A program made the position numbers and the translations under genes. From sequence record OK905446.1: a DNA stretch of 64,000 bases; one strand, given 5' to 3'. Under the pieces are notes generated by a model. The model searched no databases, was not told the origin of the DNA, and saw only the letters and a program-made list of their open reading frames with translations. Positions 17,655 to 61,596 of this stretch are shown one piece after another (within the stretch, counting starts at the first letter, position 1; every line of letters begins with the position of its first letter).

Positions 17655-18551
17655 TTATACTGTTACTGCGTATGTGTAAGACAGTTTAGAACTGTTAGCT
17701 AATGCACCAAGGTTGTCCCAGTCGATTTCTTCAGCGCCTGTTTGACCAGATTCAAGTGGAGGAACAGTCAATGCATATCGTGCAATAACACCATACACAG
17801 GGTGGAATGATTTTGGATCAGTGCCTTTGTACTGATACGCAATCGCACCATCAGTTGCGCGGTCAAATTTGTATGGGCTGAATACTAGACTTGAGATTTC
17901 GTAATCACCGAAGTCTTTCTTAACACCAACAGTAACATAGTCAGAAGTTGCGTATTTGTCGTGAACGATGTATAGACCAGACCATGCTTTATAAACGTCT
18001 GATTCACCGACACGCTGAACAACACCACAGCCAGTCAAGTAACCGAAACAATCACCACCCGCAACGACATATGTGCCTTTACAGCCAGTTGTCTTTTCAA
18101 TTGCTGCCGCAGCTAAATGAACTTGAGCATACAGGTCTTGACCTTTTTCCCAATCATTGTTACCCACAAGAGTGATAGCAGTACCAACGCTTGAAATTGC
18201 GTTCAGTGAGTCGATAATGTCACTATTGATTTCATCAGCGATTTGGTCAGCTAACGAGTCAACAATAACAGTATTGCTAACACCAAGTGCAGCCATATCT
18301 TGAATTGTTTCAAGAGAGATTTCAGTCTTCATTTTTGAAGATTTTACTTCAGCATACCAGCGATCAAGTCTAAACCCGAATTGAGTCCAGCCGCTTCCGT
18401 CGTCAGCTTCAGGTACAGCTTTAAAGCCATAAGCAGTTGCAACGGGCTGGGTTGTTGGCTGTTCAGAAACGATTTCCGTAAATACTAGCGGATATACTCG
18501 TTTTTGGACAGTAACAATGTCTGGTAAACCGTTACTATTCGATACAGTCAT
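17655..18551 (-). CDS. 24: Capsid vertex protein (gp23/gp24 HK97 fold), short form
   Basis: YPLVFTEIVSEQPTTQP, RKMKTEISLETIQD-type motif, DEINSDII, FSPY, GVIARYAL; late promoter upstream. Confidence 0.8.
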   Translation of the reverse strand: MTVSNSNGLPDIVTVQKRVYPLVFTEIVSEQPTTQPVATAYGFKAVPEADDGSGWTQFGFRLDRWYAEVKSSKMKTEISLETIQDMAALGVSNTVIVDSLADQIADEINSDIIDSLNAISSVGTAITLVGNNDWEKGQDLYAQVHLAAAAIEKTTGCKGTYVVAGGDCFGYLTGCGVVQRVGESDVYKAWSGLYIVHDKYATSDYVTVGVKKDFGDYEISSLVFSPYKFDRATDGAIAYQYKGTDPKSFHPVYGVIARYALTVPPLESGQTGAEEIDWDNLGALANSSKLSYTYAVTV

Positions 18552-18609
18552 TGTATGATTCCTTTAATTTATTGCCGCATTTCAGCGGAGAGAATGTACG
18601 TAATTTCTT

Positions 18610-18849
18610 TTATTTATACGTCTGGTTATCAACAAATCGCTTTAATTCAGGCAGGTGACCAATGTATGTATCACCGTGCATGGCAAGCGGTACTCGAATA
18701 TTACGAACACCACCAAGCTTTCTATGCAATTCGTCGATGTCAGATTGAGACTGCAACTCGATTACAGTATACGGGACGTTTTTGAACTTACAGAGGGAGA
18801 TAGCGTGACGACAGCCGTCACAGTTAGGAATTGTGTATATCGTTATCAT
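18610..18849 (-). CDS. Glutaredoxin/NrdH-like protein
   Basis: IYTIPNCDGC (CxxC), VP motif, YIG. Confidence 0.88.
   Translation of the reverse strand: MITIYTIPNCDGCRHAISLCKFKNVPYTVIELQSQSDIDELHRKLGGVRNIRVPLAMHGDTYIGHLPELKRFVDNQTYK
18611..18618 (-). promoter_or_regulatory. Late promoter TATAAATA
   Basis: Exact gp55 consensus 60 bp upstream of gene 24. Confidence 0.85.
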
Positions 18850-18867
18850 TTCATCACCTCGACGTAC

Positions 18868-18896
18868 ATTATACGGCTATCAAGGCGGTTCTTAAA
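18868..18896 (-). promoter_or_regulatory. Promoter TTTAAG-17-TATAAT (TTGTTTA context) next to the 9-bp array
   Basis: -10 at 18868-18873, -35 at 18891-18896. Confidence 0.7.
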
Positions 18897-18903
18897 CAAT
18901 TTT

Positions 18904-18968
18904 ACTAATAACTCTAATATTACTAAAACTACTAATTCTACTAAGATGAGACGGAATTTTTCCACCTC
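18904..18968 (-). repeat. Five 9-bp-periodic TTAGT cores plus a 21-bp palindrome (copy A)
   Basis: ACTAA at 18904, 18913 (TCTAA), 18922, 18931, 18940; palindrome 18948-18968; inverted copy at 61493-61557. Confidence 0.9.
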
Positions 18969-18974
18969 AAACCT

Positions 18975-18995
18975 AAAAAAGCCCCTTTCGGGGCT
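18975..18995 (-). terminator. Intrinsic terminator after the SprT-like gene
   Basis: AGCCCC-GAAA-GGGGCT-TTTTT. Confidence 0.8.
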
Positions 18996-19006
18996 GATTG
19001 AGAGAA

Positions 19007-19837
19007 TTACAAGCTGTGTTTCTTTTTGAAAGTGTCTAGACGCTGCTCGATTGTGTGAGCGTCTAGTTCAATCATGATGTACCAATCTTTGTATTTACCG
19101 CGCTGTTCGAAAGATACTGACTTGCAACCTTTGTGAGTTGTAGTCATTACGATTTCTGCGATTGCGTCACGAGCAGCTTGACCACGTGCAGATACTTTAG
19201 CAGGAGCAGCTTTAGGCGCTTCTTTCTTTTCTGCTTTAGGTTCAGCTTTAGGAGCTGGTGTAGCTACTGATTGAGCGTTGTCAGCTTTTTTCGCTTCAAA
19301 ATCAGCTTTGATTGCTTTGAAAGTTGCTGAAGATACACAACGAAGTTGACCTTCAGTTTCAGCTTTACGACCTCTCAAGAATAGAGACTTGATGTTCACG
19401 CCTTGAAAACGACGTGTCATGCGATCCATTTTCTGAACAACTTCAATTTCGCCTTTGTTGTTTTCGAAGAAAACTACGTACTTGCTGTCTACTGCTTCTG
19501 AGTTAGAAACTTTTGAACAACGTTCAGCCGTACCACCCAGTTGACGGTGTACACGTTTCCAGATTGCACCGTGACCAGTTTCGTTGAAATCTGTGTACGC
19601 GATTGCGTGAGCCATTTCATGAGTGATTGTGTTGATTTGCTCTTCTTTAGTACGAGCGTTCAAGTATTTCTCAGAAAGGCGAAGAACTTTAGTACGGTAG
19701 TTACAATCACCAAGTGCAGCTTTACGAGTTGAAAACTCAAAAGACCAGCCTTCAGCAAGCAAATCGCGTTGCATTAGATTGTTGCCGCTCATTAGGTCGA
19801 TTGCGATTGCTTTCATTTCTGATTTAGTGATTGTCAT
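19007..19837 (-). CDS. SprT-like zinc metalloprotease
   Basis: Start MTITKSEMK after the conserved leader; HEMAHA, GHGAIWK...LGG..ERC. Confidence 0.85.
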   Translation of the reverse strand: MTITKSEMKAIAIDLMSGNNLMQRDLLAEGWSFEFSTRKAALGDCNYRTKVLRLSEKYLNARTKEEQINTITHEMAHAIAYTDFNETGHGAIWKRVHRQLGGTAERCSKVSNSEAVDSKYVVFFENNKGEIEVVQKMDRMTRRFQGVNIKSLFLRGRKAETEGQLRCVSSATFKAIKADFEAKKADNAQSVATPAPKAEPKAEKKEAPKAAPAKVSARGQAARDAIAEIVMTTTHKGCKSVSFEQRGKYKDWYIMIELDAHTIEQRLDTFKKKHSL

Positions 19838-19937
19838 AATGTTCTCTCTTAAAGTAGTTTGTGTATCTCGTCTTGATGTGTTTATTATCGGGTATTGGTG
19901 TGTTATTGTCAATACCCGAAAACTACTTTTTCGTGAT

Positions 19938-25646: not shown

Positions 25647-25716
25647 AATGTTTCTCTCATGTAATATCTACTATATGATACTAAAAAGGGCTGACACGTG
25701 TCAACCCTTTTTTCAT

Positions 25717-61449: not shown

Positions 61450-61470
61450 AAAGCCCCATGGGGCTTTTTT
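61450..61470 (+). terminator. Intrinsic terminator after gene 35
   Basis: AAGCCC-CAT-GGGCTT-TTTTT. Confidence 0.75.
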
Positions 61471-61492
61471 TGTACGCGAAGCAAAAAGGTAA

Positions 61493-61557
61493 GAGGCGGA
61501 AAAATTCCGTCTCATCTTAGTAGAATTAGTGGTTTTAGTGAAGTTAGTAATATTAGT
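61493..61557 (+). repeat. 21-bp palindrome plus five 9-bp-periodic TTAGT cores (copy B)
   Basis: Palindrome 61493-61513; TTAGT at 61517, 61526, 61535, 61544, 61553. Confidence 0.9.
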
Positions 61558-61567
61558 GAGATTCTTG

Positions 61568-61596
61568 TTTACAGAAACCCGAATGATATGTATACT
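61568..61596 (+). promoter_or_regulatory. uvsY promoter TTTACA-17-TATACT
   Basis: TTGTTTACA...TATACT, 20 bp upstream of the uvsY ATG. Confidence 0.75.

Follow-up and report, generated by a model that had tools for sequence, protein, structure and literature searches.

A conserved six-copy cassette with a hairpin and 9-nt repeat core at gene junctions of KVP40-like phages

The window analyzed here is a 64,000-nucleotide stretch of record OK905446.1 corresponding to bases 1–64000 of Vibrio phage VS1 (100% identity), a KVP40-like member of the Straboviridae. The locus of interest lies on the minus strand, between a gene for an SprT-like protein, the D482 orthologue of which gives a Pfam SprT-like match, and nrdH, past which the gene order continues with gene 24 and then gene 55. 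The stop codon of the SprT-like gene comes before the cassette (hereafter c1), whose parts are listed in Table 1 together with those of the other copies discussed below. The feature order given in a preliminary description of this DNA, that is, terminator, palindrome, five repeat units and promoter on the minus strand of 18868–18995, is exact.

Table 1. Coordinates of the cassette features and neighboring genes in the window, positions of the six copies in the VS1 genome, and short open reading frames annotated on or beside cassettes in other records.
Feature	Position	Strand	Details
SprT-like protein gene, upstream of c1	19007..19912	-	ORF; relatives annotated SprT-like
Intrinsic terminator, c1	18974..18995	-	AGCCCCGAAAGGGGCT + T-run; stem 18995-18980
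Palindrome/hairpin, c1	18948..18968	-	GAGGTGGAA-AAA-TTCCGTCTC; conserved core (C/T)GGAA-N3-TTCCG
Linker + start of unit 1, c1	18940..18949	-	TCATCTTAGT; from alignment
Five 9-nt units (TTAG + 5 nt), c1	18900..18944	-	TTAGTAGAA TTAGTAGTT TTAGTAATA TTAGAGTTA TTAGTAAAA
Degenerate sixth unit, c1	18891..18899	-	TTGTTTAAG; in array register, contains -35 region
Putative T4-early-type sigma-70 promoter, c1	18868..18896	-	TTTAAG 18896-18891, 17-nt spacer, TATAAT 18873-18868
nrdH (glutaredoxin, 79 aa), downstream gene	18610..18849	-	start codon 18849
Terminator after gene 35, c2	61452..61471	+	
Palindrome + linker + five units, c2	61493..61561	+	palindrome 61493-61513, units 61517-61561
Promoter TTGTTTA...TATACT, c2	61565..61596	+	TTTACA-N17-TATACT; TTGTTTA 61565-61571, -10 61591-61596
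c1	18.9 kb		junction SprT-like to nrdH
c2	61.5 kb		junction gene 35 to uvsY
c3	87.7 kb		junction gene-12-like fibre to wac
c4	114.1 kb		junction tail tube (19) to gene 1 (dNMP kinase)
c5	170.4 kb		junction unknown 138-aa gene to lipoprotein gene
c6	223.6 kb		junction between two unknown genes
Short annotated ORFs on or beside cassettes			D482 VPHD482_0031, 0097, 0308, 0408, 0434; D527 VPHD527_0095; F86 VPHF86_0317, 0343

Both the repeat and the palindrome occur far beyond chance: TTAGTANNNTTAGTA is matched five times with at most one mismatch, against 0.37 expected, and the 21-mer palindrome twice with at most three mismatches, against 0.00 expected. At the place of the degenerate sixth unit, the D482 and CZ01 orthologues of c1 carry a true TTAGTTTAG/TTAGTTTAA.

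The second copy in the window, c2, lies on the opposite strand, with its promoter ahead of the uvsY ATG (61617) and with a GCGAAGC motif at 61476–61482, upstream of the palindrome, that is common to c3–c5. We rejected this mini-hairpin as a separate signal, as it has 51 genome copies and those outside cassettes nearly all appear to be coding. The preliminary description took c1 to be the second, inverted copy of a cassette, which is correct and yet incomplete, as the whole VS1 genome holds six copies, spaced 26–56 kb apart around its 248 kb. When the 91-bp core is used as a BLAST query, 52 related records are hit, nearly all of them at six places. Furthermore, in independent Logan assemblies the summed depth on the array is approximately 6.3-fold (130.8 vs 20.8), in contigs that end inside the array and cannot show joints or transcripts. 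We read all six copies in D482, five each in KVP40 and F86, three in VH7D, and single copies in ValKK3, CZ01, D527, nt-1, 1.081.O and one marine metagenome contig. Every copy read, in VS1 and in all of these sources, occupies the same gene junction as its counterparts and points the same way as the genes on either side of it. In the case of F86, c5 is apparently absent, with a scan returning no cassette and two ORFs abutting at the D482-syntenic place (~132.7 kb, L271 36105–37016), from which at least one of the six copies would seem to be dispensable. The preliminary description would have been undermined by a palindrome and period that are not conserved among relatives, or by a copy confined to one assembly; the six-place conservation across approximately 50 records, together with the depth in independent Logan assemblies, argues against both. 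The cassette is thus a real and old conserved family in KVP40-like (Schizotequatrovirus/Mylasvirus) phages.

Outside this group, a metagenome scan with the pattern GGAAAAATTCCG-N7-TTAG gave mostly chance matches and only two real ones, and a scan of IMG/VR for five TTAG units at period 9 returned mainly coding tandem repeats of giant viruses and none with the hairpin and C-free architecture. We note separately a C-poor intergenic array on the reverse strand (~200–330) of IMGVR_UViG_3300002231_001563, an unrelated 167.6-kb sequence, in which TTAGTATGT and TTAGAGTGA alternate with an 18-nt period, and which may be an analogous element.

The outer parts of the cassette are ordinary. The stem of the c1 terminator has six pairs, five of them G-C, and is followed by TTTTT; the arrangement is that of a standard intrinsic terminator, and it recurs at c2–c4. 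On the promoter side, TTGTTTA in c1 lies at 18899–18893 on the minus strand with TATAAT 19 nt further on, and the preliminary description was right that this spacing is the same as that of the uvsY promoter. It is not, however, special to the cassette: TTGTTTA-N19-TAnnnT has 19 sites in the VS1 genome, against 1.45 in shuffled sequence, mostly just ahead of genes (those in the window lie at 18891–18899, 52815, 53025, 55008 and 61565), and the remaining approximately 15 members of the class do not have the core. By sequence match, the pattern read as TTTAnn-N17-TATAAT, with TTTAAG-17-TATAAT in c1 and TTTACA-17-TATACT in c2, fits the T4-early-type consensus, described as a -35 element GTTTAC or as TTTACW-N17-TAYWAT (PMC1524935, PMC4122927). 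As this match and the pattern itself extend genome-wide, the shared spacing of c1 and c2 is best regarded as a general property of what is, judging from consensus, a T4-early-type sigma-70 promoter class.

The relationship between promoter and core is, in addition, variable. The distance from the array to the -35 element ranges from ~3 to 23 nt across loci, without helical phasing; c6 carries a canonical TTGACA-17-TAATAT promoter instead; and in four lineages c5, which sits between two co-directional ORFs, has neither promoter nor terminator, with its units 5–6 supplying the Shine-Dalgarno sequence and start codon. Two side observations concern promoters elsewhere in the genome. TTGACA-N16-18 has 29 sites in VS1, distinct from the TTGTTTA-N19-TAnnnT class, and these phages may have two promoter classes, one for each of the two patterns. 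The late-promoter-like [AT]ATAAATA has 23 genome sites, three of which (18618, 87620 and 114622) lie on the same strand 150–550 nt downstream of c1, c3 and c4, where ~0.2 would be expected; this may merely reflect that the cassettes border late-gene clusters.

Between terminator and promoter lies a core of ~65–75 nt, comprising a predicted 6-bp stem with a 3-nt loop, an invariant 10-mer and five or six 9-nt units. In a gapless alignment of 29 copies, which covers 11 phages plus a single metagenome contig, TCATCTTAGT (alignment columns 27–36) is invariant in 29/29 copies and the inner palindrome CGGAA-N3-TTCCG nearly so. All 29 copies have TT at the start of units 1–5, and in units 1, 2, 4 and 5 the G of TTAG never changes. 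Units 1–4 are conserved position by position (TTAGTAGWA TTAGTRGTT TTAGTGAAG TTAGWRRTA), while units 5–6 fit the local setting: in c1 and c2 they hold the -35 region, and in c5 the start codon together with its Shine-Dalgarno sequence. Between VS1 and D482, identity over the 59-nt core is 0.97 for c3, 0.97 for c4, 0.92 for c6, 0.83 for c5, 0.81 for c1 and 0.69 for c2, compared with 0.65–0.79 for flanking coding DNA, such that every core except that of c2 is more strongly conserved than the adjoining genes.

The arrays are also strongly asymmetric between strands. Their sense strand contains 1.4% C and 24.6% G at 74% A+T, and the rates of change per 100 cells relative to the column consensus are 7.9 for A>G, 14.5 for G>A, 7.2 for T>A, 4.0 for T>G and only 0.7 for T>C. 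A constraint on the duplex should not distinguish A>G from T>C, so that the asymmetry is not explained at that level. The repeat tract is, furthermore, predicted to be unstructured. Taken together, the core is a separate unit that is conserved, strand-specific, probably structured at one end and independent of the promoter.

Several simpler readings of the core were considered and rejected. An open frame runs through the array, and its AGT and ATT codons are never AGC or ATC in the 29 copies; a translated micro-ORF was therefore discarded, because no synonymous third-position variation is seen. Public records nevertheless annotate short "hypothetical proteins" of 29–57 aa on or beside cassettes (Table 1), and, given the missing synonymous variation, those that read through the array are probably spurious. 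A promoter inside the core (TGGAAA-18-TAGAAT) scores 9/12, which is within shuffle expectation, and is not conserved. An antisense small RNA was set aside because there is no promoter-like site on the opposite strand of the cassette, and the terminators are not convincingly bidirectional. Readings as IHF, Fis, MotA-box or DnaA-trio sites were compared by eye only, and none fits. A DnaA-trio element would be an unbroken row of 5'-(T/A)A(G/A)-3' trios adjoining DnaA boxes; in the TAG register only one or two of the three trios per unit fit, and no DnaA box is seen. A search of Rfam with both strands of 18500–19300 gave no match with E up to 1.

The hairpin requires more careful treatment. The palindromes of c1 and c2 differ at one position, T versus C, which gives a T.G pair on the sense strand, and the preliminary description saw in the retained G.U pairing a hint of selection on a hairpin. 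The single difference proves nothing of the kind, because there are no compensatory stem changes in 26 copies and the outer stem (GAGG/YMTC) varies without compensation and is mismatched in half of the copies. The suggestion does, however, gain support for the 6-bp core stem from one lineage, F86. In its c1 (GGCTCGA-AAA-TTGGGC), three pairs have changed (G-C>U.G, G-C>C-G and A-U>G.U) and all three are still paired, on the sense strand only, with fold energies of -7.4 kcal/mol for the sense and -2.2 kcal/mol for the antisense strand. F86 c4 has both A-T pairs flipped, which gives arms of CGGTT/AACCG; a 20-nt loop insert forms its own small hairpin, and there is a new outer stem, TGGTG/CATCA. 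When F86 c1–c3 are added to the alignment, two pairs change on both sides (a number reached by 7 of 500 shuffles), with a covariation score of 0.120 (reached by 2 of 500 shuffles), both values deriving from this one lineage. The covariation check proposed in the preliminary description shows compensatory pairs in F86 alone and broken stems in the uvsY copies of D482 (GGAAAAAAACC) and F86 (C.A).

The loop varies between copies in both sequence and length (AAA, TTA, AA), and the spacer of CZ01 c1 is 1 nt shorter. Dyad symmetry and half-site spacing, as would be looked for in a palindromic operator, are not kept in F86 c1, F86 c4 or CZ01 c1, and a single strand that folds would appear to account for the hairpin data better than a duplex site with dyad symmetry. 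We note that the hairpin is upstream of the local promoter and is, therefore, not part of that promoter's transcript.

The preliminary description also suggested that copies in opposite orientation could act as substrates for recombination or inversion. VS1 and D482 are ~75% identical, and on both circular maps the six loci follow one another in the same order and orientation; the BLAST places of KVP40 c1 and c2 agree with this orientation, and no joints between copies were seen in contigs; thus, there is no sign of inversion. Exchange of sequence, on the other hand, seems evident from tracts that copies have in common, which point to gene conversion: VS1 c3 and c4 have 45 identical upstream nucleotides in common, D527 c1 contains a TTAGTGATC TTCGAGATA TTCGAG run also seen in D482 c5, and TTAGTACAC is common to F86 c3 and c4.

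Taking these observations into account, we tentatively propose, at clearly less than even confidence, that the core is a strand-specific element that acts while single-stranded and bound by a factor, most likely on RNA that crosses the junction. Binding by a candidate sequence-specific factor would begin at the hairpin and at UCAUCUUAGU, which is invariant, and would then extend over the unstructured tract of UUAG + 5 nt units, with one unit per subunit or domain. The RNA would be polycistronic at c5 and would arise by terminator read-through elsewhere; transcripts crossing the junction might then be cut, silenced or marked, such that the downstream gene would be expressed from its own promoter, independent of upstream transcription. 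RNA is slightly more probable as the active form because G.U pairs are tolerated, all copies read are co-oriented, and c5 lies in an operon and runs into a ribosome-binding site. The position-wise conservation of units 1–4 exceeds what simple binding to repeats would need, and gene conversion could explain part of this.

The main difficulty for action on RNA is that four of the six VS1 copies, including c1, lie directly behind strong intrinsic terminators, and no promoter is recognizable between terminator and hairpin in those four, so that little RNA should contain the core. This objection favors a site acting at the level of DNA, and the main rival is accordingly that the six cores are sequence-defined replication origins, or helicase- or primosome-loading sites, recognized in single-stranded form by a dedicated phage factor, which we consider unlikely. 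The AT-rich tract would unwind upstream of a strong early promoter, and the sense-strand hairpin and C-poor strand would be recognized as ssDNA to start or prime replication, in keeping with the strand asymmetry and the A+T content of the arrays, while the upstream terminators would shield the site from incoming transcription. An iteron-type origin would have tandem direct repeats that bind an initiator, and the arrays have five or six direct repeats with a 9-nt period. T4 oriE offers a precedent for short repeats combined with an early promoter, c2 sits at the uvsY promoter as does T4 oriF, and the copies are dispersed around the genome. T4 origins have no common motif, however, and their unwinding element is downstream rather than upstream of the promoter; no initiator gene is evident, and the neighboring genes belong to no initiator-like family. 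G.T pairs, as in c1 of F86 and VS1, are poor in DNA hairpins, and the DNA fold of c1 amounts to only -4.4 kcal/mol. GC skew follows the transcription strand, with c2 and c4 lying 3–4 kb from sign changes and c1, c3, c5 and c6 not being near them, and F86 apparently lacks c5. If true, such an origin architecture would be without precedent in T4-like phages, for which the origins are described as having no motif in common; in the literature searched, we found nothing on replication start sites of KVP40-like phages.

Two further explanations assign the core either to duplex DNA or to no molecular function of its own. In the former, which is quite unlikely in our estimation, the cassette would be an operator or enhancer, with a dimer of a phage transcription factor on the palindrome and an oligomer on the 9-bp repeats, through which the adjacent early-type promoter would be activated or repressed after AsiA appears; this would supply the missing "middle-mode" control of phages that have AsiA and no MotA. 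In five of the six copies a sigma-70 promoter does follow ~40–110 bp downstream, in c1 and c2 the last unit reaches into the -35 element, and AsiA is present in the phage group. Two of the downstream genes, uvsY and gene 1, are MotA-dependent middle genes in T4, and ribbon-helix-helix proteins, for which tandem 7–11-bp repeat operators are known, provide a precedent. An operator is harder to reconcile with a c5 that has no promoter, with the variable and unphased promoter distance, with the members of the same promoter class that do without the core, and with the avoidance of C at every variable position on one strand only. The half-sites of F86 c4 are, moreover, 20 bp further apart and F86 c1 loses dyad symmetry, whereas pairing is kept in both. 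In the latter explanation, which strikes us as very unlikely, the cassette would be nothing but a recombination module resembling PeSL elements, a terminator–promoter repeat homogenized by gene conversion that serves or parasitizes homologous recombination (by shuffling, and possibly by inversion), with a hairpin and repeats that have no molecular function themselves. T4-like phages, nt-1 and KVP40 among them, are described as carrying composite terminator/promoter repeats (PMC4122927), and the apparent gene conversion between copies (D527/D482, F86 and VS1) fits this picture. The six BLAST places nevertheless recur in ~50 records with the same junctions wherever they were read, neither mobility nor indels are apparent at the cassettes, gene order in VS1 and D482 is collinear without inversion, and the cores are conserved above neighboring genes across lineages; strand-specific base avoidance and compensatory stem changes point to a sequence that is itself under selection.

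The cassette provides a sharply defined six-copy cis element, with uvsY, gene 1, wac and nrdH among the junctions that it marks, and offers a direct handle for experiments on the process that it serves. With respect to post-early transcription control, KVP40-like phages carry AsiA, and no MotA, analogue or other partner of AsiA has been identified in them (PMC1524935). As a separate observation, AsiA (PF09010) in D482 (L142 42992–44319) is flanked by a 243-aa protein and a Tad2-like (Thoeris anti-defence) protein; the 243-aa neighbor has no Pfam family and is a candidate partner of AsiA. The cassettes are also of practical concern for annotation, as they break short-read assemblies and seem to attract spurious short ORF calls, either on the cassette or next to it.

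We further note, with respect to guanine modification in this phage group, genes for preQ0/7-deazaguanine synthesis in D482 (L141 714–5081), F86 (L271 920–5288) and 1.081.O (L138 7277–11954), the last record also annotating a tRNA-guanine transglycosylase-like gene. nt-1 and VH7D encode DpdA2 (PMC6884629, PMC10516641), and published measurements on nt-1, phi-Grn1 and phi-ST2 amount to only ~35–350 modified G per million nucleotides. This level corresponds to tens to fewer than 200 per genome, comparable in order of magnitude to the number of G's that the six arrays carry on their C-free strand; a link between 7-deazaguanine and the arrays is pure speculation.

Finally, the cassette can be compared with several known systems. 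Ribbon-helix-helix operators, such as the omega heptads, the 8-bp boxes of MetJ and the ParR/ParG centromeres, resemble it in having five or six head-to-tail repeats of 7–11 bp next to a promoter; they are, however, duplex DNA sites with a fixed relation to the promoter, whereas the cassette combines a variable relation with a C-avoiding strand and a hairpin-like palindrome. The translational operator of T4 gene 32 is a structured RNA followed by unstructured A/U-rich repeats that run into the ribosome-binding site, and the cassette likewise has a structured element followed by a repetitive tract, which in c5 runs into the Shine-Dalgarno sequence and AUG. The sequences are nevertheless unrelated, and in five of the six copies a promoter lies between the tract and the gene start, which places the tract outside the leader of that gene.

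In the case of the T4 origins, the likeness lies in several dispersed, promoter-tied sites, of which oriE carries evenly spaced short direct repeats, namely 12-nt iterons, with an early promoter, and oriF, the uvsY promoter with an unwinding element, corresponds in position to c2 (PMC3016281). The repeat period of oriE is 12 nt compared with 9 nt in the cassette, the T4 origins have no shared motif, and the unwinding element of the R-loop origins oriF and oriG lies downstream of the promoter (PMC3016281), in contrast to the AT-rich tract of the cassette, which is upstream of it in five copies.

The closest comparison is with the PeSL/PmSL elements of T4-like phages, including nt-1 and KVP40 (Arbiol 2010; Comeau 2014, PMC4122927). 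Both are repeated intergenic elements in which a stem-loop or terminator lies shortly before an early promoter of the sigma-70 type, with a Shine-Dalgarno sequence and a start codon after it, and recombination between copies is likewise common to both. The nt-1-type PeSL has an A3-4G3-loop-C3T3-4 stem and a TTGYVH-N17-TAWWAT promoter and occupies hyperplastic regions next to indels (PMC4122927), whereas the cassette has a GCCCC...GGGGC terminator stem, a TTTAnn -35 element, a 65–75-nt hairpin and repeat core between terminator and promoter, and fixed loci, four of which (c1–c4) are core-gene junctions, with all six retained and collinear in VS1 and D482. VS1 also contains near-identical AAAAGGG-TTGACA...-CCCTTTT elements, at 25704 on the minus strand of the window and at 148807, 205117 and 242827 (minus strand) of the genome, in which the stem-loop encloses the -35 element; these match the nt-1-type PeSL consensus and would thus constitute a repeat family separate from the cassette. 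The core is not described in the literature searched (a search that did not extend to the KVP40 genome paper, PMC180978); the phi-pp2 paper makes no mention of repeats or palindromes, and the excerpts of the nt-1 PeSL paper (PMC4122927) do not describe the core. Repeated regulatory junction cassettes are a known kind of element in T4-like phages, and the hairpin and 9-nt-repeat core that they carry here is undescribed in that literature.
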